Position numbers and translations under genes: made by a program
In this document: positions 5,856 to 46,656 of the stretch, piece by piece
Position numbering within the stretch: position 1 is the first letter of the stretch
Layout of the letters: each line of letters starts with the position of its first letter
From: Anthoceros angustus
Taxonomy: Eukaryota > Plantae > Anthocerotophyta
NCBI GenBank assembly: GCA_010909165.1
Contig: MU008159.1
Location: 744,001-808,000 of the forward strand
DNA: 64,000 bases
Reading direction: 5' to 3'
Notes under the pieces: generated by a model
Seen by the model: only the letters and a program-made list of their open reading frames with translations
Told to the model about the DNA's origin: nothing
The model's database searches: none

Positions 5856-8800
5856 GGTCCACAAACCTGTACCATCTCTCCCCGGCCACGGTCGGCCTCT
5901 TGGGGAGCACCATGCTCCTCAAGTTGGACAATCCTCAGCTCGAGACTCCAATGATTTCCTCGTTCCCTCAGGATGCGGCAGCCTGGCGGATCCCTCCTCA
6001 GACAGCTTTGGATTCTCTCCTGCAGAAGCTTGGTGGCGTTAGCTCCCCACATTGGAGACACCCACTCCACTTGGCCGCACTCGCCGCCCTCCTCTTGACA
6101 GACTCCACTCCTGTATGAAGTTGCTCCCCTCCGGCACCCTGCTCCTCTCTCGCCGCTTCCGCTCCACGCCATGAGCATCCACCTCTCCCGGTGGAATCGG
6201 CATTCTCCACGGCCGCGCCCACCTCACTTGCGCTTCCACCATCTGCCGTGCTTCCATCCGTTGGGCTTCGCGGGCACGGTGCCAGTCCTGCTTTGTGGAC
6301 CATTTTCCGGCTTCGGCCTCTCCCTCTCGGCGAGTGGCGCAAGCGGTACGTCGATTTACCTCTCCTCCTTCAAGGCGGCGTTATGGGCACAAACATCCGG
6401 CGCATTGGCGGGGTTTGTTCGAGCTTAAGCGAGCAGCTTGGTAAATCTTCAAAATCAACGTCCCAAACCATGGTGGGAAGGCCAGCAGTCACTGGCGCAC
6501 TGTCGATGCGCGACAAAGTGAGCGAGGCTGCGGTGATGGTGGGCGAGGTGAGGTAACCACAGGTGATGGGGAAGAGGCAGAGGAGGAGGGCGGGCGTAAG
6601 TCCTAGGGCATGCCAGCTGGCTCATGTGCCAGTCATGCCGTTTTCGCCGGGCGCAAACTTGGAGTTTGTGCACACCACCTATTTGTGCACATGTGGCATG
6701 CACATGCCTAAAACCCCGCGCGCAACTTCGGCGATTGTCCACCACACCTTTCTGTGCACATATGGCATCCATGCATGATTGGCATATATAGGCCTCCCGT
6801 TTTGATGACATTTTCGTAAGCCAAGGACAAATTTAGCCCTTTATGGATTACCATATCCTCATCGAAGGAAAATTATTTGCCATTGTTCATGCGCATTTCG
6901 TGGTCCAAGGACATTAAATTCCCATTATGTATGGTCATTTTGTGACCCAAGGACAAATGTTTCTCATTCTTCATGACCATGTCTTGGCCGTAGGTCAATT
7001 TTTGGCCATTCTGGATGACCATTTCGTAAGCCAAGGACAAATGTTTCCCATTATGGAGGATCATCTTGTGATCGAAGGACAATTATTTGCCATTGATCAT
7101 TACCATTTCGTGGTCCAAGGACATAATTTTGCCATATTGGAAGTCCAATTCATGACCCAAGGACACATGTTTCCCACTCGTCGTTGCCATGTCCTGGCCG
7201 AAGGTCTATTTTTTGCCATTCTGAATGACAATTTCATTAGACACTGACAATGTTTCCCATTGTGGATGACCATTTCAGGTAAGAAGGACAATTGTTTGAC
7301 ATGGTTGATGACCATTTCGTGGTCCATTGACATACTTTTGCCATTTTGGATGGCGAAATCGTGACCCAAGGACAAATGTTTGTGGATCAACATGACCATG
7401 TGTTGACCGTTTACGGATGACCATTTAGGACAAATTTTTGCCTTTGTGGATTACCATTTCGTGACACAAGGACAAATGATTCCTGTGTAGACGAGCATTC
7501 CTTCATCCAAGAACAAAATTTTGCCATTAATCATCCCCATTTCGTGACCCAAGGACAAGTGTTCGCAATGCCATTTCGGTCTCGGTAATGCCCACAGATG
7601 TGGCATGCCATTTCAAGGGCAATACCAGCTTAGAACCTGCCATGCTCCAAGGACCATGCATGTGTTAATTTGCTATATTTATGCTTTGCCCCCTTCTCGC
7701 ATACCACACTCGATCCAGCCCGCGATGCGACGATGTCCGCGACCACATTCCAGGTAACCCCGTGGTGACGTTATGGCGGTGGCCATGGGGTGTGGGGAGT
7801 GGTGGAGCCGGGGTGGGGGCGGCGCCGGGAGGTGTGGGGTGGGGGGAAGAGGAGAGAGGAGGGAGACTTCGTGGCGTGCCATGCCACCTGGGACCTTGCC
7901 TTGCCATGTCGCCTTCACCACGCGCTACTTCTTGTATGTGCAGAAACCCTTTCGTGTCCACGTATGCCATTACTCCATGCATGCCATGTATAGTCCCCGA
8001 TTTTGTAGGCCATGACAAGGTCATGGCCATATAACAACCTGCCATGAACCAAAGACAATGGCTCCCTTTCTCTCGCATAAACTTGTCCCCTCCACCATGT
8101 TCCAAGAAAGGTGTGTGCAAGCCATTAGAATATTTGAAAATCCAGGGCATGGACGAAAACATGCCATGTCTGAAGGTCGTGTGAATTGACGGACGCGCCC
8201 GTTCTCTGTTTCGGTATCTACTTCATCTTCTACACCATTGTGCAAGGACGGTGGGTGCACGTGAGAGCCATTCAAGCAAACTAAATGCCCCCATTCATTA
8301 TGCCATGAATGAAGGACCGTCCGTATGTGAATTTGCCATATATATGCCAATTCCGTTATCCCATATAATGATGTGCATCGTTCGAGACTCCCGTTGTGCA
8401 CTCCACCAATCAAATGCGTCACATGGCAGAACGTGTCATGTATTCGCACCGTCTGGGAGGACGCCAAGGTGACGGCTCTAACGTCACTTTGGCGTCGCAC
8501 CCTCGCAAAGGATTTCCAGACCTTGGGAGACATGACATCTAACTTCGTGTTCCGCGCTCCTCTTTGCCCGCGGCGCGCCACCTTCACCCTCATTGGATTT
8601 ACCGCCAACCGTCACTGTTGGACAATGGCTGCCATGAGAGCCTGCCATGTCTGCTTTCTCACATGTAAGGAACGGCTGAATTTCAAGATCCTCTCATCCG
8701 CAACCCGATGTGGCCTGGTGGACAAGAGGCTGCCTAAAGTGGTGGTGTTCCGCTTTAAATGTCACCACCTTGCCCCTCGCTTCACGCTACTACCTTTCTT

Positions 8801-29730: not shown

Positions 29731-30900
29731 CTATGGTGGGTTAGCTAGGAAAGTGGATGACTCACCTAAACCCAGACCTTGAACATGTTTTTCATGTAGC
29801 TCCTTTCCGAGAGCTTTCGAAAAGATATCTGCAGGATTGTCTTGTATTGGTATGTACTCTAACCCTATCTGCCCTGATGTCACTAATTCTCTGATGTAGT
29901 GATACTCCATACCAACATGTTTGGTTCGAGAGTGAAACACAAGGTTTCTTGCAAGTGCTATTGCTCCTTGATTATCGCTCGGCTAATCGACAGTTGGTAT
30001 TCCAAGCCAAGCTCTTAGAGAGAGAAGCCATACCAAACCACCTCCTTAGCTGCGGCTATTTATACTCGATACTCAGCTTTTGTATTAGAGAGAGCCATTG
30101 TTGGGTGCTTCTTGCTGGACCAACATATAGGGGCACCTGCCATACAAACTACATACCCATTAAACATCTGTAGTTCATACTTCTTATAAGTTGACACTGC
30201 GCATAATGTTCTCAGGGTGGCAAGCTTAACAACAGGAGCAAAGGTTTCCAAGTAGTCCAAGCCTGGTACTTGTAAATAACCTCTTGCAACCAGTCTTGCC
30301 TTGTACCTGTCAAATGTGCCATCAGCTTTGACTTTCAGTTTAAAGACCCATTTACAAGATACCGTCTGTCTTCCTAGAGGTAACTTAGCAAGTTTCCAAG
30401 TTCCATTCTCTATCAGCAAATCATATTCAGACTGAATAGCTTTCCTCCACTCTTTATGATCAGGTCGTTACATGGCCTCCTCATAAAACTGAGGTTCAAG
30501 AGGATGCAACAAAGTGGGTACATTGGCCTGAACATTTGAAGATGAAACACGAAAGTCAGGAGCAGAGTAGTAATCAGGAGGCCGGCATTCTCAAGTAGGA
30601 TATCGATGAACACGCTTAGGCAGAGGCTCAGGGGCAAGTGTGTCAACAATGGGATCATCATGAGCCAAAAGGTCAGCATCTGCACCATCAGCTGCATCCG
30701 CATCCACCAGATCAGGTGCTGGAGGATTTTGTTCCTGAACTACCTGGTCCTGTCTCATAGGTTCAAACTGATCATCAGCAGCTATCTCTACCACATCAGA
30801 CATTTAACGATTGTGTTGAATGCTTCCTTCAAGTCTACAACTTGCATAGGTTGGTTCTGATTTCTTACACTCCATGCATAGACTCTACTATGTAGATTAT
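29731..30900 (-). mobile_element. Ty1/copia RT-RNase H fragment with internal deletion
   Basis: ENGTWKL, CKWVFKLK, RYKARLVARG, ETFAPVVK, then directly GYV..AGAPICWSSKKHPTMALS, ADNQGAIALA, FHSRTKHV, NPADIFSKAL. Confidence 0.92.
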
Positions 30901-31649
30901 CTGGTAGTGTAAATCTATCAAGAACTCTTTGCCTATCGCGTCTATTAGGATTCAGCTCAGCAGGGTGAGGCTGCCACTACTGGCCATCCTGATTGGCCAT
31001 TTCATTTCGCTTGATTTTGTGCTCTTAGAATGCAAATGTTTTGCATTCTTATTTCCTTTACAAAATATGATATTTGCCGATTAGGCATTTGTCCTAGTGT
31101 ATTCCCATTGAAATTGCTTAGGAATAGCAATCCAAGGGGAGTGCACTAGGATCTCTGCCTGATTCTGCAGAAATGATATAGATGTTTTAAGAAAATAGCA
31201 CAAATCATAAGCGGTAGTCCGACGGGCTGAGCGAGATGCCGCTTAAGGAGCCGGAGGGCACTAGCAGCAACCGCATCCGGAACCAGTGCTTTCTCCCACT
31301 AGGAGACGGAAGTGAGCCAACTCCCAGACTTCGTCCCCGCCACCGGATCCCAAACGTCGGAGGGCAGAGAAAGAGTTGGCCACGAAATGGGCCAAGGAGG
31401 TTGAGGGTCCGGCATCGAATGGGCAGGACCTGGGACTCCTAATTGAGGCCGGAGTGCCGGATCAGGACCGGCTCCGGCGAACGGTCTAGCGGTCCATAGT
31501 CGGATAGGGGATGCTTGCACCCTCGACGGGATTGAGGGGGCTTTGCCGGCTGCCGCGGTAGAGGAGACCCGGCAAGTCCTGGCGGACGGCATGATTTGGG
31601 GGCTTTGTCGTGCCTCGTGCCGAACGCGGAGGTCAAGCCCAGCGCGATG

Positions 31650-32982
31650 GTGGAGCTCTAGGGTCGGCGTAGGCCGCCCAAGCGCCCGCGGCAGTGGAGA
31701 GTTTGGCTAGGATTAAAGAGGAGAAGCGCCGGACGATGGAGAAGGAGGCGAGGTCCGCCCAGCAGGACCGTGCTAGAGTTCTTCAGTTGTGCGAACAGCT
31801 GAAGCACGCGCAGGAAGCCCAAGCACGCGGAGAGGCTTCGAGCCTGGAGATGGAGAAGGCATAACGGGCAACGGAGAAGCTTCACGAAAAGGCAGAGGTC
31901 GTCGGGTGTATAGCTACGAGTTCGCCTCAACAAGGAGAGCACCAAGCCCTGGAGGCTCAGCTGAAGGGGGGATGAGATGCGGAAGCCAACGCTAGGATGG
32001 ACCGGGACCACTATCGTAGGGACCGAAACCGCTGGAGGAAGGCAGCCGGAGCAGCCACTGCCCACCTGAAGGAGGATCAGGTGACATGGGAGCAAGCTCG
32101 AGCTGTCCGATGAGCGGAAATGCAAGAACGGCTGGGCGAGTTGATGTACCTCCTGGCGCATCTCCAAGGCACCGAGGAGGCGCGGCAACAAGTGGAGGCG
32201 GAGAAGGAGAGCCTGGAGCTACGGCTCCAGGTGGTGGAGGAAAGGATTGGGCTCCTCCAGGGACGGATTGAGGACTTCGAGCGAAAGGTGGACCGACTCC
32301 AGCTCTGCCTTCGGGCAGAGGAAACTCATTATAGAAGGAAGCAACTGGACGTCGACGAGCTTAGGAGAGAACTCACAAAGGCCACTCACCTGGTGCACCT
32401 ACCAGAACGACTTGAGAGGGAGATGCAGCTCTTGAGCCAGCAGATGACGGGCCAACACCAATGGAAGCAGGAAGAAAAGAAACTGCTGGTTTGTCTGCGC
32501 CAGGCGGAAGGGGGGGCCCGGTCCTTGACAGGCCAACTGGGAGCTCTGAGGAGAGAACAGGAGAAGGAGCGCGCCAATGAGAAGCAGCGGCTCCAGGAAC
32601 TCACCGAGGCTTCCCTAACGGCCTCCTGAGATGTCACCAAAGCCTAGTTGGAAGGCTTAGGAGAGGAAACGGCCCAGGGTGCAGAGGAACATACTGGACA
32701 CGCAAACACCGGATAGAATACCGGGTTCCCGCGGCCTGTGTGGAAGAAGCCATCCAGCAGGTGGACTCGGACTTCGCTTACTACCATGTGGAGCTCTTGA
32801 AGGCCATGAGCATGGTGCACCAGTGGGTCGAAGCAATAGGGCCACCGGAGGGTTTGGAGGGAGCCGGGAGAGAGGAAAGACTGGGGGAGAATGCGGCAGC
32901 AGGGAACCTAGGTACCCTGTTTGGAGATGAGAGTAGCAATCACATGAACTCCTCCGAGGACGGACCCAGAGGTCCGGCCTGA
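31650..32982 (+). pseudogene. Disrupted coiled-coil ORF, probably a retrotransposon accessory ORF
   Basis: Heptad-rich ORF 32120-32629 with E/R-rich fragments either side separated by stops and frameshifts, in a TE context; no family recognised. Confidence 0.35.
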
Positions 32983-34638
32983 GCGGGAACCCATTGGGCG
33001 CCGGGGCCCTGGTGGCGAACGGACGGGTCCCTTCCCATAATCGGACAGGGGTGGGGACCCACCAGGTATAGGGTGGCAACGTTGAAACTCCGGTGCAGTT
33101 ATCAGCAGAGCTAGAGGAGGACCTGGTGGTGACAGTGGTTGTCAGCGCACCTCCGATAAGAAGGCCCAATCGGGTTCGGGGGAGGGGGGCCCGGGCCCTT
33201 GCAGGAATGCAGGGGTAAAGGATAATAGGGCTGAGCGCCCCTCAGGCACCAGGGTTGGGGATTGGGCTGCCGGGGAGTCACCAAGTCAACAACATTCATC
33301 GCCGTGGATGTGGGTAGCCACACGAAGGCTCGCGTCACCACGCTGCATGTGGTGCCAAGAGGCGGTCTTGGGGTTGTAATAAAGGCACTGCCTTAGAAGC
33401 AATATAAGAGGGGGGTTGCCTCCCCCATTATGTGATTTACCTTTTGGGGTTGATACCATGTTGTGCACACTGACCCTTGCAAGACGAGTGCTAATGCGAG
33501 TCCCGAGTCACCGAGCGGCTGACTACTCTAGAGAGGTCTATCAAGGTTCTGGTAATGAACCCCCATGATTATGGAACATGAGTAGAGAGGCAAGGTAGGT
33601 ACAAGGTAGAAAGTTCGGCGGTAGTTTAGTTGAACCCTTGTAACCTCTGGTAGTTGACATAGCGGAGGTAGGGCCGTACCATCTAGTACCAGCCCGAACA
33701 AGTCAGGCGGTATCTTGAGCAATGTCTCTGGCGCCATACCGCGGGCTAAAATCCCGCTTAGAGGTCCGACCGGCTCACGCAGTCCGCTCCCACCCCTAGC
33801 GATCAAGAAGGGACGGGTGAATGGTCAGCGATAATAGCCTAGCCTTGATCAGGTAGAGCCAAGTAGGTAAATAGTAAACAGCCAAATGGCAACCATTCTG
33901 TGATCGAATCCCATACTACGCGATACAGGACTAGGGTCCGCCAGCAAAAGTTCGTCCACAGACATCTAGGCGGATGTAGTAGTGGTGAGCTTCATAAGGT
34001 CTAGGGAATTGCGACAAGGGCTTTCACCTCGGAAGTAGGCCAAGCTACGAAAGAAGGTGGCTCAGTATTATTGGAAGGAGGACACAATGTATGTACAAGG
34101 TTCATAACCTCTGGACAAGGTTCTCGAAGGAGAATGGTTTGTGCAGAATGCACTACATGAGATGCGTACATGTGTAGTCCTACTAATGATAATGTTTTGA
34201 CTTGGAGTTTCACATTATCAGGGGGATTGGTTTGCACCTGTATTTGCATATTAGATTTGTTTGCTTGGCTGTCTATTGAGGATATGCTCATATGAATGCA
34301 AGTGCTTACCGTGTACGACATGGCTCACATCTCACCAAAGCAAACCATAACCGATGGAGATTATTTAAAAAAAAACCAAAATTGAAATAGTCAATCTCAA
34401 TTAAGAGGTCAACTGGGTTGAATGTTTTCATCTAATTGACCGACTTAATTTACTCTAATTACTCTTCAAAATTCTCATTCATCCCTTTATACTTTGAAGG
34501 AGCGAGATAAGAGGTCCGAACGTATATTTACACAAAAACATCGCAATACGAGGAATCCCATTTATGGAATTTCCAATTAGGGAGGGCCAACAGAAGAAGA
34601 AGAAGAATTTTATTTAAGTCTACTGAGGATGGATTTTC

Positions 34639-34742
34639 GTCATCGGACTTGGTACTTAACAACTTGTACCATGGTGTGCCTAAGCTATGTACTTGCCATG
34701 ACTTGGTACTTAACAACTTGTACCATGGTGTGCCTAAGCTAC
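34639..34742 (+). repeat. Two 53-bp-spaced copies of GACTTGGTACTTAACAACTTGTACCATGGTGTGCCTAAGCTA
   Basis: Copies at 34647 and 34700; the core is the reverse complement of the array at 41740-41825. Confidence 0.85.
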
Positions 34743-35245
34743 TTGCACCAAGGGCATCCACTCCCTTTAGGGACCCCATCCAAGTACCGATCTAAGCTCA
34801 GGATGCTTAATCACGCGTTCTTATAAATGTGTGTCCATTTGGCCTAAGCCATTTGGACACACAACAGGATGTACCATACGGTACAAACTAATCAGGACCA
34901 TACACATGAGAATGACCTAATTCGTAGCGAATATGAGGAGCCCTAGACCTGCCTGTGTTGCCAACCAAGCGGTCCCGGCTTGGGTTGAGGAGGCGGGGCG
35001 GTGGTGACGTGCCCCCAACTGCGCAGTCTTTCACTTCTGAAAAGCTAGGATGCCCCAACCCTTGTCCGTCTGCGCACCATCGCCTGAGCCTTCGCTTACC
35101 GACGCCGGCGAGGTCCTTCGCTTCTCTAACTTGTGTTTACATAGCTCCACCTTGTCTGTGTGCACCCTTTCCCGAGAGTATTTCTGGTAGGTAGGTTGCG
35201 CTGCGCTACCTCGGCCTCGGAGTACTTGAGAGCGAGATACGAACT

Positions 35246-36608
35246 ATGGCGGAGCATCTTGCGTCCATTTTCGGCACAGAGAAGGACCGTGTGAACTGTC
35301 CCTTCTACTTTAAGATCGGTGCCTGCCGACATGGTGATCGATGCTCGAGGCTTCATAATCGACCTACCATAAGTCCGACTTTATTATTGTCCAACATGTA
35401 TCAGCGCCCAGACATGGTGACACCCGGAATGGACCTAAATGGTCAAAATATGGACCCGAGAAAGGTCCAGCAGCATTTCGAGGTATGCTTGTGCCTGTAT
35501 CGGATGGAAACTCGTGCAATGCTTCGTCGACCTAAAATTGGGGGGTACCTTGCTGATTCTGAATTGCGTGGGTAACGTACAGGACTTCTTTGAGGACATC
35601 TATGAGGAGCTGAGCAAATATGGAGAGCTCGAGAGCCTCAACGTCTGCGATAATCTTGCTGACCATATGGTAAGTCCTTCGTGCACTGTTTGCGAGTGTG
35701 TTTTTTTGGACCTGTGTGGAGACGGTGAACTGAGACGGGTTGTACTCCCGTGGTGTTATACTTCTTGTTGGTCTCCCAGGTTGGGAACGTTTATGTGCAG
35801 TTCCGAGAGGAAGAACAAGCTGCAGCAGCTCTGCAGGCTCTGTCAGGGCGGTTCTATGCAGGCATGTCCTGGGTCCAAGCAGGTTTAGGTTTTACTGCGG
35901 CGGCCATCTCATTGTGGAGAGTCTGATTTGTGGTTACTCCGTTGTGTCCATTTGCAGGTCGACCAATCCTAGTTGATTTTTCGCCTGTCACTGATTTCCG
36001 AGAAGCTACCTGCAGGCAGTATGAGGAAAATACCTGTAATCGCGGCGGCTATTGCAATTTCATGCATTTGAAGAAAATTGGCAGGTAGATGACTGTTCAC
36101 TCCCTTGCGTTGCTCTATCATTTAGTAGCAGTGCAGCTGAATTCTGTAAGTTCTGGTTTACAGGGAACTCAGGAGGAAATTATTTGGATATCAGAAAAGG
36201 TATAGTCGGAGCCGGAGCAGAAGTAGGACTAGGAGTGTGAGTCCTCGCAGGGACCATGACAGGTATGATCGTTATCATGATCGTGCCTATGATGAAAGGC
36301 CTCCTCGGGGAGCCAGGGGCTATGACAGGAGGTATGCTGAGCGGGAAGATCGTCGACCAGATCGTGATGATAGGCGTCCCTGGAGGCCTGAGTATGGGGC
36401 AAGGCCTGAGTACGGTGAGGGTCCTGTAGGCAGGCGCAGAAGTCGTAGCCCCATATGTCGTCGTACTAGGGGCAGTCCAGCAAGAGAAGGAAGTGCTGAG
36501 AGGCGAGCAAGGATTGAGCAGTGGAACAGGGAACGGGAGAACAGGGACAGGGGAGAGGAACATGCTGGAAATGGAAGTGCCACAGTGGCCAATGGAGACG
36601 TATTTTGA
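35246..36608 (+). CDS. U2AF35: Splicing factor U2AF small subunit (U2AF35), 5 coding exons
   Basis: [37 protein letters not shown] (ZnF1), [33 protein letters not shown] (ZnF2), RS tail ending [17 protein letters not shown]. Exons 35246-35482, 35583-35669, 35780-35861, 35958-36084, 36164-36608. Confidence 0.97.
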
Positions 36609-37625
36609 AGAGCCTGAGCAATGGAATTTGGTTTGTCCCATTCCTGGCTTACTGCACTTGGGTAGCGTGTCCAGGTCCACCCAAGCTATCTTTCCTCTTG
36701 GTAGTCTCTGAGGTGGTAGCAGCTCACAGACCATTTTACTCTGTGCAGGTGGTGTGCAGGATCACGATGCTGTGCCCTGCAATCTCAAGTCTTTCGGTTC
36801 TTGGGCTGGGACTTTGCTAATGTTAGTTGTGCATTTCCTGGTTTGTGCGCATGCAGGGTTCAAAGAATGCATTTCCAGGTTCATTGTGTGCGTCTGCCTG
36901 TTTGCGTCTGGTGCATGTTCTGAATGAGCAGGTCACCTGCCCTTGTGTGCAGCTGCCAGCAACACTTGCGGTCACTCTGGTTCAATCTTTGACCAGTGCA
37001 TGGGATATGACTTTGTTTATAGGGAATGTGCACTTTCAACCACGTAATGTTCCCTTTTTGAGTTTGCTGCAGGTCTCAGGTAGGTGAGAATCTCCAGTGA
37101 CATGGCATGCTGCATGCTAACATGATATCTGTTTACAGGTGGACGCGCGACAACCGGTGGAGAACTTGACCGCTTCTCGGTGATAACGGGGATGTGCTTT
37201 GCAGGAGGGGGGGAGGACTACTCTGATGCCAGTTTCTAAGAACAAGAACTCTCTGATCAAGTCTCCATGTTTTGCAGGCGCAGGAGACAGATGTAGATAG
37301 GATCATCCCTCTTTGCAGGTTCAAAACTGTACCATTCTTTTCTCCCGGCTGATTACAGGTTGCAGGTACAGGCAGCTGGCGGCTTATAGCGATAGGTTTC
37401 TCAGTACGATATTTGATTTTATCACAGGATTATATATGGATTTTGTCGTCGGCTCGCTGTCCTATATGTTGGGCATCATATGAGTATCTGCCGGTACTCA
37501 TGTCCCTACAGTACGTGCGATTGTGTAGACTAGTCATCGTGTCGGTCGCGTAGAGAACGCAGAGTTGTATGCAAGACAAACACATTCCCCGAGACATTTC
37601 ATCCTACACTACGTCAGGAAAGGTC

Positions 37626-40355
37626 TCACATCCTACCGCCTATCCAACCTCCCTTCACTTCTGACAGAGTCCGAACCTCCGCGAGCTGCCCCTCGGTATC
37701 ATAATCCCTTTCGATGGCTATCCTGGTGCCGTCTGCAAGCAACCAGCTAGCACCAATTGTCAAAATGCCCTCCTCCTGAATATCCACAGTAGCTGAGATG
37801 CCTCCAGGCAACCACAGTATGCTGACGTCCGTGATGTCCCCGATGTGGGCAGCTTCCTCTTCACCTCCAGGAAGAGAGACCGAAGGTGGGAGCTCTCGTA
37901 TGACGGAGGCCTCTTTAGTCGAGTACACCACTGTTGGCTGTCCCCGCGGTGGGAAGCCCACAGAAGCAGTCTTCGCAAACGACTTCCAAGATCCTGTCAA
38001 CTGATCGGGAACCAGCCTGGGCCGCCGAGAAAAGGGCACCAGCTTATGTCCACCGCTTCCACTGCCACGACTCACAGCGCGTCACATGTTAAAGGTTAAA
38101 AGAACAACGCGGAAGCAGCTTCTAGTACTACACAGCACACTTGCACCACACACCTGATCGAGGGCATAGACGCAGGACCCAACCATTCCTCTTCATAGGC
38201 AACGACACGCAGCACCTGAAGTTCTTCGCCGCCGTCCTCGATGGAGATGGTATGAACTAGTCGTAACCTTCTGTGGCCTCCCGAGACTAGGCACTGATAC
38301 AGGGTGGATTAGATCAGATTGTTCACCGATTGACGCATCCAACTTGCATACTAAAAGCGACTTGATGGAACTAAACTGTGTAACAATACGTACATGCTCT
38401 ACTTTGAATGTTGGTGGCAAGGCATATTGGTCATCGCCGCTGCTTGTAGCTTGTGCCAGGAGTCTGAGCGGGCCCCTTGAGTAGGACCCATCCTGCAAAA
38501 AGCGTTACATTGGCTTTAGATTGGATCAGCCCAAACCAAACACGCGACTATAGAGGCACACTACAGATTCACAAGATGCTCGTTCTACAGATCGCAAGTT
38601 CACAGCCAACCTCAAAGAAAATTAAGCCCGCTTCTTGCCCCATCAAATCTTCTTCCATCACGTCATCCCAATCATCTTGGACTATTTCTGAGCCATGATC
38701 CTCAACAACTTCAGTGCCAGGAAGAGCAGGAGCAGGAGAAGCATGTTCCTGTAGACTTTCTTTCCATCCTGCTTCGGACTTAACATGGGAAGAACTGCCC
38801 GAAAGAACTCCCTCAGGGGCAAAAGCTTCTACGGGATCTTCAAGCACTTCAACCTCTGTAACATCCCACACAGCATCCCAAGGCCTCTCCATCTTTTCAT
38901 CGTGTTCCATGATGGATCTCCAGTCAGCAGTGATTTGGTCCGCGACGAGCTCCTTTGGAAGCCCGAAATTCGTCAAGGCTCCTTCCCCTTTCTCCCAGTC
39001 CACCACAATCTCTCCTGCCACGTTTATTTCCGATTCCCACTCCGTGTCCTGAACAACTATACTATCCCCACCTTCTAGGTCACTTAAAATTAGAAATTGG
39101 TCCACATCCTCCCAAGGAATTGGTAGCATGTCCTGTTCTACAGACTGGATTTCTTCTGTGCCTATCAGTCCTACTGGAGTAAGTTCATCCAAAAGGAAGG
39201 CCTCCCCAGCCTCTCCCCTCAATTCACCAGATTCTATCAAATCCAGCTCGTCCAAGTCCACGTCCTGCACAACCACCTCGCCTAGGCCTTGCTCCCCGTG
39301 AGGGTTGTCAACTTTCCAGAAAACCTTTCTCGCGAGCCTTGGACTGATCCCATCTTCTTCTTTGACTTCAGTGGACTCAACGATACAGAGGACATGTGCA
39401 TCGTAAAGATACTCATTATTTTCTCCAAGAGACATTGCCTCCATGTCAGCTGTGATGGGAGAGAAAGCTGCTCCGACACCCCTCCACACTCCAGAGACAC
39501 TGCTTGAAAATGTTTTCCACAGTGGAGATGCAGCCAGCTCCTACATGAAAAATGCAGTATCAGGGGATCACACGAAAAGCAGGTCACTCCAAGGTCAGAA
39601 GGCTGGAAGTGTCTGGAGCATATGGTTATGAAGTGTACCTCAGGCTGCAGCACAGCATCAATCTTGGTTGGCAGGGAGGCTGAAACCCGTACCCTTGCAA
39701 AAGAAGATCCTTGGGAACTATTCTCTGCGTAACGACCACTACCTTCCATCACATCCTCCAACTTCTGCAAACGACTGCCCACATCCTGCTCTGCGTCTCT
39801 TTGCGCAGGGTACTTCACAGACGGAATTTCAGCCGAAAGGGCTACACCGTTCTCGCCACTCAAACTCCCTGCCCTGCTTCCAGTTGAGGGACCCCCAGTC
39901 CTGGACGGAGTGATTTTACTACCCGTCTTGCCTCCCTTGACTGCCTTTGCTCCACTTGAGCCCCGAGCATTGTTATCTCCACTCCAGACATTATCTTTCC
40001 TGCTCCCTGCATAGCCTGCAGCTGACCTTGCAGCATCATTATCTGTACTCCAAACATTGTCTTTCCTCTTGCCCTGCTTTTCCCCAGGTTTCCTGTCCTT
40101 GGGTCCCCTCTGCTTCCCTCTCTCGGTAGACGCCCTCAGTGTTGGTGCGTGCCGAGCTCCCTTGCATGGAAAAGACTTGGGAAAGTGCAGGTCTGTGCCG
40201 GTGGACCAGTAACTCCCCAAAAATATATGCTTCGTTCCCCTTGAGTGGAAGCATGCTGGGCTGGTGCAGCCACTGCTTGATGACATTCTCACCGAAAATG
40301 CACCACACTGAAAGTCGGGTTGAGAGCAGCTGGGCCTCATACCATGGCAGACCAT
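37626..40355 (-). CDS. Conserved, probably plastid-targeted protein, DUF3598-like; 5 exons
   Basis: Ser-rich transit-like N-terminus. Exons 40355-39639, 39540-38611, 38492-38394, 38293-~38154 and ~38061-37626 join in frame at GT-AG sites (VSGVWRGVGAAFSP, FFEDGSYSRGP, WLPGGIS, ERDYD). The family name is from recollection only. Confidence 0.75.
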
Positions 40356-41239
40356 GAGATTTGTAACCTGTAACTGCCTTTGGCTGTGCTGCAGCCTTCT
40401 TCTTTGCGTGAGGTTCAGTTATCCATTTCCCTGCAAAAACACAGCGTAAAGCCTACCGCAGCCGAGACATTCCTGTACCCAGACACGCCCAAGGTGTGTG
40501 ACCATGTCCAAGACTGCCGTATGACTCCCTTTCCGACTCCTACCGGCTCCGTTATAAAAAACGGAGCCCATGCACGGGACCGTCGCAAGGCTGCCTAACT
40601 GTCATGCTTTTATCCTCTCCCGAGCCCTAAGGACATTGGTGAGTACGGCCGGGGGTACAGTGCAGCTGGGGGCAATATGCGAATGTTCCTTCCCGGTGGA
40701 GTATCTCTACAGGCACAGCTGTGTAATGTGTGTGATAAACACAGACGATGGTGTTATTGTGGATTCCGGATGGGTGGACCGCCGAGGTTTCTGCTTTCGA
40801 GCGAGTGTTTTAGTACAAGGGCGTTTCAGTGAGGTTCACAAATGAAACACGCCCTTGCTTTGTCACAGCAGTGTTGCTCTGGATCCATTCTACGAATTTT
40901 GAGTTCGTCTGGAAGCAAGGCTTCCACAACCACTCCCAGTTTTTACTTAGTGCGGTTCGTCCTGATGCGCGCAGGCATAACCACCATCCCTAGGCATTGC
41001 TCCCCACACGGAATATAAACTTTCCAAAAGCCTTGTCTTTGAGACATATAGGTTGGTCACCACTCACATCCATGAAGTCTTCGCATTCACCAAGGACCTG
41101 CAACCGTAGGTCGAACAACACGAATTGATCTACGAACATGAGCTACAGCCACGTAGGAAAAGTCATTCTACATCCACGTAGGAAAGCGAAAGCCATTTAG
41201 TTCCTGTACCCGTGTACCCGTCTACCACCTACGCACAAC

Positions 41240-43300
41240 TAAAATTGAAGTAAATCTCTTTGGATATATCCAATGAACTGAATAATACTATTTATTTTAT
41301 TTTAGCTATATAATTTAATATTTACTATTTCATCTTTAATTTTTTAACTTTATACATTTTATACCAAAAATAAATAAGATAAAAATATAGGGTATTCGAT
41401 AAAAGAAAAACATAAAATAGTAAGAAGTAAAAACTATTTACTATCTTATAGACATACACGAAATTCAATGATGATTTTTATTTTTTTAATATTATAATTT
41501 AATTTTTTCATTTCATCTTCAGCCTTTTTAACCTCATACATTTGAGATACAAAGTAAAAGATATTTGGTGGAAAAAAGTAAAGTAATAAGAAGTAAAATT
41601 GTACCTCATTTTAGTCGAAAAATGGAGGATTTGCAGATAGTTTAGTTCACTAATCAATTAGATCTAAACTAAACTACACCCCACCACATCACCCAACTAC
41701 ATGCCACATTAGATGTGTCTGTGTTCTAGCACACTTATATAAGTTGTTAAGTATCGAGTCCCATGTACAATGTTGTTAAGTACCAAGTCCCTTGTACAAT
41801 GTTCTTAAGTACTAAGTCCCATGACAGGAATAATTCCGTACAAGTGGACCATAATAGACTTTCTTTTCTTCTTTTAATAAGATAAAGTATTTTTCCTCAA
41901 ACATTACTACCCATACCCCGAGGGGTGGTTCAACAGGGTAATGCCGAAATAATGTTTTTTGAAACAATAAGTTTCAACATAAATATTTATATTTTTAAAA
42001 TTTATAAAAAATACCTGATCTAACAAGATCTCTTCATACGGATTAATACCATACTAAATACGGTACTTGAGTATGGTAATTTAGTATGGTTTCATTTTTT
42101 GTAGAAAATAATAATAATAAATACTATAAAACCATGTGATAGTTCTCACTTTAGCTATTGAGCTAAATCCGGGGTTTTCAGCATTTTGGGGTTGAAGAAA
42201 ATACAAGATGCATTCTGATTGTATTCGTTTTTTATCTACCAAAAATGAATGTTATAATTTTTTATAACATCATATATATTAGGTGATAATATTTAGTTTT
42301 CCATTAAAGTCATCCATGTATGAAAACGATCATGGAAATTGTGTATGCTTTGATAGGTATAATTTTTTATAAAATGCTATATATTATGTGACAATCTTTA
42401 GTTTTCCATCAAAGCCATCCGTTTATGAAAACTATTATGACAATTGTGTATGCTTTGATAAGGTTAGTCCATCACTTATATTCCTAGATTGGGAGGGCGT
42501 TTTATTAAATAAGTAGAAATGGATAAACAGCACATTAGGATAATTCAACATCGAAATTTAAAATTTGACACTTTGATCATATAAATTAAAAGAAATCAAA
42601 TTATTAGTACTTTGTGAGGATAAAAATTATAACATCCAGGTGTTATACAATAAAACACTTGATCTAACAAGACCTCTTCATCATCAAAAGCGATCAAGCA
42701 CTTAGTATTACGGTGACTTGGACAAGTTTGTGGATCTTGGTTTTCTTCAACCATGATAAATCCACCTACATGTATAGGAGCTGCACAGTTTCCCACTAAT
42801 TGTAATCTTGCAGATTCTAGACAAACTTCGAGCTCTTGTTCAAACAAGAACGGAAGCACAATATCATTTGTATCCTGTGTGGATCCTCTACCACCTGCAT
42901 AAGTTCGGTATGTCAAACCATCTAGTCCTGTGCTTTGTACCTCAATCCATCTACCATGTCCCACACTAAGCATGGCAGGAGCCCATTCCTTTGCTTGCAC
43001 CACTTCTTGTAGTGATCTATGCATTCGCGCATTTGATTTTGTATCTTGTAAATTTATTCCTCGTTCATCCTCTAGACAAAAGAAAAACGCACTTGGTTGG
43101 TACACAACAGCTTCGTGAAATCTAAAATAAAAAAATAATAACACTACCACTTTTGAGCCTTCCATACTTGATTAGGGGTGTTCCTTAGAATTGCTCCTAT
43201 ATATGTATGAAAAATAAAAATTATTTGAATAAACAGGAACTGTATGTCAAAGATTTTCATATAGAAAATCATTTTACATCTCTAGATTCTGTGTTGTTCA
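41240..43300. mobile_element. AT-rich insertion(s) with internal direct repeats; possibly Helitron/non-autonomous DNA-TE derived
   Basis: Abrupt AT shift. Imperfect duplications at ~41305-41440/41490-41600 and ~42250-42357/42357-42463, plus three 29-bp units at 41740-41825. Weak hairpin (CACAT..ATGTG) plus CTAG at 41703-41729. Confidence 0.45.
42596..43165 (-). CDS. Orphan 189-aa ORF in AT-rich DNA
   Basis: ATG-started, uninterrupted, with Cys/His-rich C-terminus (CPSH...C...YCITPGC); no family recognised. Confidence 0.3.
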   Translation of the reverse strand: MEGSKVVVLLFFYFRFHEAVVYQPSAFFFCLEDERGINLQDTKSNARMHRSLQEVVQAKEWAPAMLSVGHGRWIEVQSTGLDGLTYRTYAGGRGSTQDTNDIVLPFLFEQELEVCLESARLQLVGNCAAPIHVGGFIMVEENQDPQTCPSHRNTKCLIAFDDEEVLLDQVFYCITPGCYNFYPHKVLII

Positions 43301-44273
43301 ACAACAATGCCAATGCACTTGATATCGGCATTTATTTGCTGGATATAAAAAGGGCAAAGGACGCTCGATGCGCTCCACGCCACAGGCACTGGTGTGACGG
43401 CAGCCATTACCAGACGCTGCATCTGGTTACCGGCGGGAATGTCGGAGCATGCGTTAGCGAGGGTAGATCCAGGAGCTGCAATGTGGAGACCTGACAGTAG
43501 GAAATTGGAAGCCGCGAACATCCCTGTTACATGTCGGGATACACTGATTCTGTGCTCTTATAGGCGCTTGCGGGCATAAGGGTTTCGAAGTGGGTGCATG
43601 TGTATATTTTTTAATTGTGACGAATTGGCTAATTGCGACCACTGTGCCTCCCTTGACAAGCTGCACCTTCTGCAAAGAGAGTGAAGTACAGATCGTTGGC
43701 AATCTCCAGTTGCAAACAGGCATACCACAATGTCAACCTTTCTACGCAATCTTGTATGAAGGTAAAGTTGTGAGGGAGTAGAAGCTTCTTTTCTTCTTCG
43801 TGACCAGATATTAATCCATTTAAACCAACGACGGACTTGCAAACAAGACGAGACAAGTGGCCGGCATGCCAAGTTCAGGAGTGTGGATGGATCACCGTGT
43901 GGGATCACACCCAGTGAGGAGCTGAAAGCAGCTGTTGATGGACATGACTCGTCACAGACGAGCATAAAGGCCCCTAATATGCTGCTCCGGATCAGGATAT
44001 TCGTCCACCTTCATGCATTTGACAGCAGTGGCCCGCTCTCACAAGTCTTCTACACCAATCCCTCCGACAAAAAGCTCGGCAAATATTCCAGCGAGCAAAT
44101 GTTCAAAATTTTGCTGCTCAACAGCAGCTTTATCACCACCGATATGCTCAAAACAGCCATCCAGGTCACGAGCACTACCTATCTCACTCAGCTGCATGAG
44201 GGTCTTTCTCACATACGCCAATCTCTTGAAACTGGACTGGTAAAAAATTGTCCTAGACGACAATATCATGTTA

Positions 44274-46656
44274 TCACTGAGCTGGTCCGATCTGCGCTGC
44301 TGAACCTGATGCTGGCTTTTGCCTTCCATCAGGGATGGAAATCAATGTGATAGGCCTTGAGGGCCTGATGAATGGCACATCACAAACGAAGTAGCCCTTC
44401 CTTTCTAGCTGTAGTATTTCTCCTTTCTTCAAATTCCTCATATTCGAATCACCGATTGCTAGAACTTCCCACCAAGTGCGAGGATTCAGGAAATTCTCCA
44501 GTTGATCTGTCTCTTCCAGCTGGAACAGGCAGACCACAATGAAAATCATTGAACACAATCTGAGATGAAGTGAAGTTGAGAGAGAACAGAACTTACTTTT
44601 TTCTTCGTGATCAGATAATCCAATTCCACCAGTGACAGAGAAACAAGTTCGGGAATATCGGGTAGCCATGTAAGCTTTAGCTTTGTAGTCTTCACCGAAC
44701 CTTCAGGATGTAGTACTCCCGTGAGACCAGTGACTTTTCCCATTCCATCCTTCTGCACAGTTCCAATTATAACGTTTCCCCAATCCATGAGGGTAACTTC
44801 CTCTCCTTGCTGCACTTGACTTGCATCCTCCAGGTCCAGCCATATCGTCTTACTGAAAGTAGTAGCCTTCATTCCAGCACCTGCAAACTTCTTGTGCCGA
44901 GGTATGACCCGCACAAAAGGTGCATCAGGGCCATTGCTCAGGCTGAGAAGAACCTTTCCCTCACTATAAACTGCTGTATGTCTTGGACAAATAGGATCAA
45001 TTATCTTCTTGTTGATAGTCCAAAGCTTGTCCCATTCCATCAGGTTGAGATTTTTTGAGGCGCCCTAGGAATAAACAGCAGCTATATTAGACAGCCACAG
45101 AACGTCAATGCAGGCAAGGATGCGGTAGAGCTTAGCATATTAAATACCTGAGACAGAATGAACTGTGTCAGAGCTTCAACGGTCAGACCCCTTCTGCGGA
45201 TACCCTGTACAGTTGGGAAACGAGGATCATCCCAGCCCTGCACTCGTCCGCTATCCACGAACATCTGGAGCTTCCGTTTGCTCAGCAACGTGTAAACAAA
45301 GTTCAAACGACTGAAATCCCAAACATGAACTTTCCTCATCCCCATATCGGCCAAAATCCGGTAGTACTGGTCATTCCTATCGTGGTACTCACTACTTCGA
45401 AGAGCATGTGTTACGCCTTCGTAGCTGTCCACAAACGGACAAGCAAAATCATACGTTGGGTACACCTTATACTTGCCGCCAACTCTGTGGTGAGGAGTTG
45501 GATTGCACCGGTAGTACACAGGGTCCCGAAGGGTCTTGTTGGCCGCCTGCATGTCAAGCTTCCCCCGCAGACAACACTCCCTGCCCTTGTCAGTGCCACC
45601 CAGCATCTCTTTCCACAGCTTCAGATTCTCCTCCACACTGTTGTTGCGGCATTTTGATTCAGTCCCCACCATTCTCTGCTCTTTCATCTCATCTCTAGGA
45701 GTGTCATCCACATACGCCTTCCCTTCCCGGATCAGCCTTTCGGCCATCTCCAGTAACAGCGGGAAATAGTCAGACGTGTAGGTGAGCTTATCCCCCACAA
45801 TTCCCAGGGTTTTGAGGTCTGCCAGAATGCTGAGAACGAACTCGTCCTTTTCCTTGGACGGATTGGTATCGTCAAACCTGACAATCAAAGTGCCCCCATA
45901 TTTCTTTGCAAAATACTGATTCAACAGAGCGGCTTTGGCGTGCCCTATATGCAGGTACCCGCTAGGTTCAGGCGGAAATCTGGTGCAAACCTTCCCCACC
46001 TCGGCCTCAGGCAGATCCACATCAAATGATCCATCTACCTGCTCCTTCTTCTGGCTGCTGGCCGCCGTGACATTGGACTTCTTACTAGCAGATACCCCAT
46101 CAGCGAGAGGCCTGCCTAAAGCCCTCTTGCTGCGATACTTTGCCATCACGTCCTTAAACCCCTGATGCTGAGCAGTGAGTCCACTATACCATCGGGCCAG
46201 ATTGGGATATCTACCAGCCTTAACAAGGGCCTCCCAACGCAGCAGCGAGGCAGCCAGGCCGGCCCAGACAGCAACATCGGCAATGGACAAGTCATATCCA
46301 ATCAAGAAAGTCCTGAACGTGAGGTAGAAATCGGCAAACTCGCACGCCTGCTCGAACTCAGCTTCATTTCGGAACCGCGGAGCGTACTCAACCCACTCAT
46401 CCACCTGAGACGCAGACAGTGCGTCTGACCCATAGAAATTTTGCAGCTTACTCACTCTCGCAATGTACCTCAGCACAGTGCTGGCTCCCTGAAGCTGCTC
46501 CCCGGAAGGAAAAGACAGCACCGGCACTGACCCTGGCACCAGATTAGAGAAGATTTCTAGTTCGAAGTCAGAGACGGCTGCAGCACCCAAGATGTCCAGA
46601 GGCACTGCATCCGAAGAGAAACAAATCTTCCTCAAACAAGTCTTCTTCTCCGCCAT
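44274..46656 (-). CDS. GluRS: Cytosolic glutamate--tRNA ligase (GluRS), 3 exons
   Basis: GST-like N-terminal domain, RFPPEPSGYLHIGH (HIGH), LSKRKL, GWDDPRFPT, LQLERKGYF. Exons 46656-45148, 45064-44597, 44519-44274. Confidence 0.97.

Follow-up and report, generated by a model that had tools for sequence, protein, structure and literature searches.

A deeply conserved array of 3'-splice-site-like motifs directly downstream of the U2AF35 gene in hornworts and other land plants

The U2AF35 locus and its motif array

U2AF35 is a splicing factor that helps to choose the AG with which an intron ends, and to our knowledge no control of its own level has been established in plants. Here we describe a dense array of motifs resembling 3' splice sites that lies directly downstream of the U2AF35 gene of the hornwort Anthoceros angustus. 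The DNA analysed, hereafter the window, comprises 64,000 nt (positions 744,001-808,000, forward strand, of contig MU008159.1 in assembly GCA_010909165.1), and all coordinates are those of the window unless another sequence is named. Reading of the sequence places the U2AF35 coding region on the forward strand in five exons (35246-35482, 35583-35669, 35780-35861, 35958-36084 and 36164-36608), ending with a TGA stop codon at 36606-36608. Exon 1 has a Pfam zf-CCCH match (a CCCH zinc finger), and the five exons, which were compared singly and as separate alignment rows rather than as one joined protein, show 92, 86, 81, 95 and 52% identity to the 'Splicing factor U2af 38 kDa subunit' of the liverwort Riccia sorocarpa. 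Their summed length of 978 nt corresponds to 325 codons plus the stop, and the Riccia protein likewise has 325 amino acids.

The initial annotation of this stretch had listed 17 sense-strand CAGG tetramers between 36665 and 37430 (766 bp), and on recounting every one of these positions proved exact; the antisense form, CCTG, occurs four times. The claim that this far exceeds the roughly three copies to be expected is likewise borne out, the 17 copies comparing with 3.3 per 766 bp at the rate of the window as a whole and with a mean of 5.35 +/- 2.0 in 2000 dinucleotide-preserving shuffles of the 766-bp region, none of which reached 17. The longer motifs are even more strongly enriched, with eight TGCAGG (0.63 in the shuffles) and ten CAGGT (1.5 in the shuffles), and the excess is specific to the sense strand, since the antisense counterparts of all three motifs occur at shuffle expectation. 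The base composition here leans slightly towards G and T (G 0.27, T 0.31). Elsewhere in the window, on either strand and with the U2AF35 locus excluded, the maxima for any 766 bp are 13 CAGG, three TGCAGG and four CAGGT, and the array is thus atypical within these 64 kb.

The sole equal of the array in the window is the U2AF35 gene body itself, which holds 17 CAGG in the 766 bp from 35777. The tetramers of the gene body (35777-36543) come from four real CAG/G acceptors (the slash marks a splice junction here and below) and from AGG arginine codons that follow CA in the C-terminal domain; all four coding introns end with CAG/G. The third of these introns has an apparent GC start, CAG/GCATGT at 35862 (region 35858-35890), and this donor is required for an intact conserved FYAGRPI motif. 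An alternative in-frame GT donor lies 21 nt downstream, at 35883, and would add seven residues inside the motif, while the second hornwort sequence introduced below has an ordinary CAG/GTAGGC donor at the position equivalent to 35862.

Conservation from hornworts to flowering plants

A search with the last exon of U2AF35 returned a close relative, P0001, on the 4.5-kb Logan contig L001, which judging from its sequence is the orthologous U2AF35 locus of another hornwort with the same gene structure. In the collection searched, a full-length hornwort U2AF35 protein was not found with the last exon, a conifer-like protein or an alignment of Riccia and window exons as queries, nor did any U2AF35 mRNA contig of a hornwort or other bryophyte come to light. 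The two hornworts are deeply diverged: at four-fold degenerate sites encoding the same amino acid the third base is shared in 21 of 86 cases (24%), which indicates saturation, the C-terminal domain is 52% identical at the protein level, and identity is 28-50% across introns and 5' flank, and 36-50% within the introns, the level expected of forced alignment. The 3' flank from 36620 to 37380 is 66.4% identical over 714 aligned columns. Its 50-nt bins up to 37350 range from 54 to 76%, apart from 44% at 37200-37249, and so come near the range of conserved coding exons. The equivalent stretch of L001 contains 15 sense and two antisense CAGG; according to our reading of the alignment (A1), about nine of the 17 window CAGG are CAGG at the same position in L001, and at two further ones L001 keeps an adjacent donor instead. 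Comparison of the two loci shows that the array region is under strong purifying selection.

This conservation ends at about 37380, and identity drops to 24-44% over 37400-37650. The last CAGG listed in the initial annotation (37425-37428) falls within this stretch, is AT-rich in its surroundings and is not conserved. The window continues with the last exon of a convergent gene on the reverse strand (37626-38075), BFA1, a biogenesis factor for chloroplast ATP synthase (Pfam BFA1_C, E = 8e-07), which lies outside the element and ends about 200 bp from the CAGG array. Since the alignment with L001 continues across this exon, at 54-72% identity, the same convergent gene appears to follow the array in the second hornwort as well. 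The poly(A) regions of U2AF35 and BFA1 probably fall around 37425.

Conservation of this kind does not reflect a protein. Each reading frame contains 7-15 stop codons in both hornworts, 13 of the 16 indels relative to L001 are not multiples of three (the other three are), and mismatches fall on the three codon positions in the numbers 79/79/82, that is, with no 3-periodicity. The motifs therefore do not belong to a separate coding gene, a possibility that had been raised as one that would overturn a regulatory reading. Likewise, Tandem Repeats Finder (TRF) reports no tandem repeat in the array, and a repeat finder detected nothing beyond 12-20-nt matches centred on the acceptor core. Rfam gives no match in 30000-45000 at E values up to 1, RNA folding is no better than that of shuffles (z-score -0.18), and RNAalifold applied to the most conserved module, termed module B below, yields no consensus pairs.

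Profile searches added the loci of the liverworts Riccia sorocarpa (L004) and Calypogeia fissa (L005) and of the angiosperms Amborella (L006) and Theobroma cacao (L007), the last consisting of two tandem U2AF35 paralogues. A sense-only excess of CAGG, TGCAGG and CAGGT is found 3' of the U2AF35 stop codon at all six loci of hornworts, liverworts and angiosperms, and at no locus did more than seven of 500 shuffles reach the observed CAGG count. Bryophyte loci carry 15-26 CAGG and angiosperm loci 8-11 over 1.1-1.6 kb. In all seven loci examined the array stands directly 3' of the U2AF35 stop codon in the same orientation. Enrichment and much of the sequence are thus kept in another hornwort, two liverworts and two angiosperms. 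The regulatory reading of the initial annotation therefore withstands three of the conditions named there for its refutation, namely a density typical of other flanks (judged here within the window), a lack of conservation, and membership of the motifs in a separate coding gene; it is partly supported, with its comparative predictions holding strongly.

The conserved sequence is organised as a series of elements, all on the forward strand. The first, block 0 (TGGTTTGTCCC, 36629-36639), is a predicted weak 5' splice site, G/GTTTGT, whose GT (36631-36632) follows 22 nt past the stop codon. L001 and Amborella have an identical block 0, each Theobroma paralogue departs from it at one base, and Riccia has GTTGGT; in every locus the block is found 22-45 nt past the stop codon, in the terminal coding exon, and fits a weak donor of the form G/GTNNGT. 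About 90-135 nt beyond it come a CTYAC branch point and a 20-mer. In the window the branch-point region (AGCTCACAGA, 36721-36730) contains CTCAC at 36723-36727 with its branch A 22 nt before the first AG. The form AGCT(C/T)ACAGA is common to the two hornworts and Riccia, and the angiosperms have GCTTAC at the same position. A short pyrimidine-rich run separates the branch point from the 20-mer CTGTGCAGGTGGTGTGCAGG (36741-36760), which is an 11-nt tandem duplication of the acceptor core preceded by the conserved branch point, and which offers tandem acceptors 11 nt apart (AG at 36747-36748 and 36758-36759), the second and third CAGG of the initial annotation. This 20-mer is invariant in all eight sequences of alignment A3 (columns C139-G158), which comprises the two hornworts, Riccia, Amborella, the two Theobroma paralogues and two angiosperm metagenome contigs. 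Its length would suit a microRNA target (~20-21 nt), though we know of no conserved plant microRNA that matches it.

Donor, branch point and acceptors together delimit a predicted 3' untranslated region (3'UTR) intron, U1, of 118 nt (36631-36748), which the alternative acceptor would lengthen to 36759 (129 nt). From donor to first acceptor the window has 118 nt, L001 115, Riccia 113, Amborella 159 and Theobroma 124, lengths that are usual for introns of these genes. Both Theobroma paralogues (L007 5001-6777 and 9515-11187) carry block 0 and the 20-mer after their stop codons, at 6821/6940 and 11233/11352, and thus the element survives gene duplication.

Between this core and the next (36761-37059) lies a stretch, with CAGG at 36854, 36876 and 36929, that is conserved in hornworts (54-72% identity to L001 in 50-nt bins) and of which 36761-36815 is also common to Riccia. 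It is followed by module B (37060-37139), aligned in seven sequences from hornworts, liverworts and angiosperms (A4) with invariant GCAGGT and ATG..A..T.T.TACAGGT. Module B consists, in order, of an acceptor TGCTGCAG/ (AG 37071-37072), a 7-nt putative micro-exon GTCTCAG (37073-37079) and the donors GTAGGT (37080) and GTGAGA (37084), and its 3' part would form a 59-nt intron with the branch point CTAAC (37117-37121) and the acceptor TTTACAG/ (AG 37137-37138). The micro-exon measures 6-7 nt, being GTTCAG in angiosperms, and the mini-intron 59 nt in the window, 57 in L001, 63 in Amborella and 65 in Theobroma.

The whole array is collinear between hornworts and Riccia, and beyond module B three further blocks come in the same order. 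Block C (37188-37206), with the acceptor-like GGGGATGTGCTTTGCAG/G and CAGG 37202, retains 27 nt at 93% in L001 and has a related core in Riccia. Block D (37265-37325), running from CATGTTTTGCAGG.GCAGG to TCTTTGCAG/GTTC with CAGG at 37275, 37281 and 37316, is collinear with L004 ~7263-7325 and partly with L001. Block E (37350-37372) is the stacked TTACAG/GTTGCAG/GTACAG/G with CAGG at 37356, 37363 and 37369; its GCAGGTA is kept in L001 and Riccia, and its acceptors 37358/37365 and donor 37366 are position-conserved. In Calypogeia (L005 5895-6380) block C is present as five copies with a 30-45-nt core, GGGRRTGTGACC.TGTCGTGCAG/GTG, at a spacing of 105-114 nt, their spacers having diverged beyond detection by TRF; on the sequence comparison these copies are a lineage-specific expansion of one array block. 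The annotated coding sequence of Calypogeia U2AF35 is intron-less, and the idea that this gene is a retrocopy recording the splicing of U1 was dropped, since the region of its stop codon can still be aligned to the part of the block that holds the branch point.

An exact scan of Joint Genome Institute (JGI) metagenomes with the 20-mer TGTGCAGGTGGTGTGCAGGT, the invariant block shifted by one base, gave 19 matches, of which two are the downstream regions of angiosperm U2AF35 genes (L018, L019) and 17 are unrelated repeats of the GGTGTGCAGGT type. The latter lie in short tandem repeats on GC-rich metagenome contigs (L009-L017, L020-L026), and the exact-match scan is therefore not specific to plants. 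Sequences L002, L003 and L027-L037 have short, unrelated 3'UTRs. L038-L042 represent a single angiosperm mRNA whose 3'UTR, 380 nt long, does not contain the invariant 20-mer, which may mean that the block has been spliced out or that this paralogue is without it.

Splice-signal anatomy and possible function

The individual sites have the character of acceptors. When the 73 CAGG sites of the four bryophyte loci are pooled, their consensus is T(0.71) G(0.63) CAG/G T(0.56), the plant acceptor core TGCAG/GT; on the 5' side there is modest T-richness with frequent G, so that pyrimidine tracts are weak. On the 3' side of the junction a purine stands at +3 in 55% of sites, and A at +4 and G at +5 in 14% each; because the bases from +3 to +6 do not fit a donor, the array is acceptor-like rather than donor-like. 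The clear exception is the pair of good donors at 37080 and 37084. Acceptors that are position-conserved between both hornworts end at 36748, 36759, 36856, 36931, 37072, 37138, 37204, 37318, 37358 and 37365, and position-conserved donors begin at 36631, 36749, 36932 (a conserved CAG/GT), ~37080, 37139, 37293 and 37366. The branch-point-like GCTAAC (37116-37121) and the two stacked groups of sites (37067-37088 and 37356-37372) to which the initial annotation had drawn attention are present. According to crystal structures and isothermal titration calorimetry, the small subunit of yeast U2AF grips -3Y, A, G and +1G with two zinc fingers and contacts +2U, with a Kd of 0.47 uM for UUAGGU and 1.7 uM for UCAGGU (PMC7505975). 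By these data the repeated YAG/GU motif is the direct ligand of the U2AF small subunit, here in its C(-3) version, which is bound rather less tightly.

Because its core differs so little between hornworts and flowering plants, the array is most likely a part of the mRNA that is spliced and serves its control, and not a product of chance. Real splicing within the 3'UTR would fit the TGCAG/GT consensus as well as the conservation of a donor and branch points and the spacing typical of short introns. The explanation that we favour, with a confidence that we would put at about even, is that the array forms the conserved, multi-intron 3'UTR of the U2AF35 pre-mRNA and acts as an alternative-splicing switch that couples U2AF35 output to nonsense-mediated decay (NMD). 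In its layout a weak donor 22 nt past the stop codon would be followed by a branch point, by two acceptors spaced 11 nt and by a series of collinear weak TGCAG/GU acceptors, the chain including the back-to-back acceptor, 7-nt micro-exon and donor of module B and then the 59-nt intron, and the core of this layout would date to the common ancestor of land plants. The number and identity of the weak, AG-dependent sites used would track the capacity of the cell for 3'-splice-site recognition, in which U2AF35 is the component that reads the AG. Where a junction lies over 50 nt beyond the stop codon, its splicing would then mark the mRNA for NMD, and decay of the spliced mRNA would provide negative feedback on U2AF35 output: since weak AG-dependent acceptors need U2AF35, more U2AF35 would mean more 3'UTR splicing, more decay and hence less U2AF35. 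The analysis demonstrates the motif excess and its restriction to the sense strand, the absence of coding function, selection, conservation over great distances and the arrangement of splice signals; we infer that these sites are used in the hornwort, that the spliced isoforms are targets of NMD and that U2AF35 controls the choice among them.

Two lines of published work bear on this model. Introns in plant 3'UTRs that lie more than 50 nt past the stop codon trigger NMD (PMC1693880, PMC3711448). For legume U2AF35, a further report describes 3'UTR alternative-acceptor and intron-retention events that were validated by reverse transcription PCR (RT-PCR), and its authors proposed self-regulation (PMC5568362). 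The predicted junctions 36931/32, 37072/73, 37079/80 and 37138/39 would all be well over 50 nt past the stop codon even with U1 spliced out.

It should be noted that several observations weigh against this explanation. The first predicted junction (36630/31) is 22 nt past the stop codon in the window and 22-45 nt in all taxa, that is, less than 50 nt from it, and hence only later junctions could be classical triggers of NMD. A good downstream donor is absent from most of the CAG/GT sites, so that the exon-intron chain is not uniquely derivable and several chains fit. In addition, C at -3, the base of the repeated motif, was bound 3.6-fold more weakly than U by the yeast protein (PMC7505975).

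More tentatively, the array may measure the dosage of U2AF35 in land plants at large by a cascade of its YAG/GU ligands with weak pyrimidine tracts, and may have done so for roughly 450-500 million years, the age commonly given for the divergence of bryophytes from vascular plants. The invariant 20-nt double acceptor and the acceptor/micro-exon/donor unit would anchor the cascade, and successive, possibly stepwise, splicing would turn U2AF35 occupancy into the fraction of mRNA that is decayed. On this view the array is complete, with 15-26 sites, in bryophytes and has been reduced in angiosperms.

The alternative that survives best, and which we regard as possible if rather less than probable, is that the array is a conserved spliced 3'UTR module without being an autoregulatory NMD sensor of U2AF35. 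It might be controlled by SR or hnRNP proteins, by temperature or light, by the clock or by another regulator, or it might act on which poly(A) site is chosen and how long the 3'UTR becomes, on export, or, by way of exon-junction complexes, on translation. The evidence from conservation and anatomy fits this alternative equally well, and the conserved first junction at 22-45 nt past the stop, too near for classical NMD, speaks for it, as does the invariant GTGGTGTG between the two acceptors of the 20-mer, which U2AF35 binding alone does not explain. The legume isoforms, as reported, differ in 3'UTR length and not in demonstrated stability (PMC5568362). On the other hand, the repeated element is exactly the YAG/GU read by U2AF35, and it stands in the U2AF35 gene itself; moreover, where splicing-factor genes contain ultraconserved non-coding elements, they as a rule regulate themselves negatively by unproductive splicing (PMC4379411).

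The initial annotation had also offered a variant in which the region, left unspliced, serves as a decoy or sponge that titrates U2AF35 or the U2AF heterodimer on the RNA. Many copies of the binding motif per transcript are what such a sponge would need, but about 17 sites on one mRNA species are a small number beside the many thousands of transcribed introns. We find no support for this variant and consider it very improbable because donors, branch points and intron-sized spacings (113-159 and 57-65 nt), needless for a pure sponge, are conserved too, and because angiosperms retain the splice modules with far fewer CAGG, only 8-11 over 1.1-1.6 kb. We are just as sceptical of a reading of the CAG/GT sites as pseudo-5' splice sites that bind the U1 small nuclear ribonucleoprotein in the terminal exon and suppress cleavage and polyadenylation nearby. 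Ten of the 17 sites are CAGGT and two good donors, CAG/GTAGGT (37080) and TAG/GTGAGA (37084), are present, yet the +3 to +6 positions of the 73 pooled sites are not donor-like, their upstream side agrees with the acceptor consensus TGCAG, and the key sites have conserved branch points in front of them.

Still less likely is a separate gene, composed of coding micro-exons or giving an independent structured non-coding RNA, or an antisense 3'UTR of BFA1. Conservation close to that of coding exons and the convergent end of BFA1 200 bp away could suggest as much, but the region has a non-coding signature, no Rfam match, no structure and sense-only enrichment, and downstream of the liverwort and angiosperm U2AF35 genes, where no other gene is called within 2.7 kb, the array still follows directly after the stop codon. 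Lastly, a chance or compositional artefact, which the G+T-rich composition and the equal CAGG density of the gene body might have suggested, is effectively refuted by the shuffles, none of 2000 reaching the observed counts, and by recurrence at six orthologous loci.

Relation to known systems and other features of the window

As a kind of feature, this would be a conserved regulated-splicing element in a splicing-factor gene, and such elements are already known. Poison exons and 3'UTR splicing in SR-protein genes are examples of unproductive splicing of splicing-factor genes with ultraconserved elements (PMC4379411), and the poison exon of SMNDC1/SPF30 is conserved across kingdoms (PMC11357089). 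The U2AF35 array resembles these elements, which link alternative splicing to NMD, in its core splicing-factor host gene, its non-coding and splice-signal-centred sequence, its predicted junctions well past the stop, its conservation near the coding level and the homeostatic feedback logic proposed here. Unlike poison exons, it lies entirely after the normal stop codon and leaves the coding sequence uninterrupted, and it differs from the group as a whole in being a chain of many weak acceptors that bear the five-base ligand of the factor itself. Two traits are unusual, namely the array of the factor's own ligand and the double acceptor of 20 nt, which does not vary between hornworts and flowering plants.

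There is a likeness also to legume U2AF35, with the same gene family, the same 3'UTR location, the same kinds of event (predicted here) and the same idea of self-regulation; that report covers two legumes by gene models and RT-PCR and does not describe sequence elements, an array or wider conservation (PMC5568362). Feedback loops of plant NMD factors and eRF1 employ 3'UTR introns or long 3'UTRs, and share with the present model a built-in NMD trigger in the form of a 3'UTR intron located over 50 nt beyond the stop codon (PMC3711448, PMC5397192). These loops differ in that their sensor is the efficiency of NMD or termination and not the choice of splice site, and in having no motif array.

Recursive splice sites, the ratchet points of long animal introns, are juxtaposed acceptors and donors of the form YnNCAG/GTAAGT. 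Many array sites are likewise CAG/GT, and module B, with its acceptor and a donor 6-7 nt further on, has the layout of a recursive-splicing exon. Most array sites differ from ratchet points in lacking donor-like bases at +3 to +6, and the hornwort host region, at ~0.8 kb, is not a long intron. Acceptors that abut a consensus 5' splice site were not seen, strong donors being confined to 37077-37088.

The literature covered, which is incomplete and so cannot prove novelty, contained no account of these elements that we could find, and within the same incomplete coverage we found no link of plant U2AF35 to NMD or to conserved non-coding sequences. In Arabidopsis, both the splicing of FCA and the time of flowering change when U2AF35 expression is altered (Wang and Brendel 2006, cited by PMC2277414). 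If the array is a feedback sensor, it would offer a short, precisely defined, extremely conserved and mutable cis-element with which to study how the capacity for 3'-splice-site recognition is held constant. In that case few non-coding elements of plants would be conserved as deeply, and it would stand beside the ultraconserved poison exons that SR genes have in animals. For annotation there is a warning that gene models ending U2AF35 near its stop codon miss several predicted 3'UTR introns.

Two further features of the window stand apart from the array. About 500 bp 5' of the U2AF35 start there is a direct duplication of ~45 bp (GACTTGGTACTTAACAACTTGTACCATGGTGTGCCTAAGCTA unit) at 34645-34745, situated in an AT-richer stretch (GC 0.42). 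Farther downstream, GC content falls sharply to 0.32 at 41001-43000, between flanks of ~0.50-0.53.

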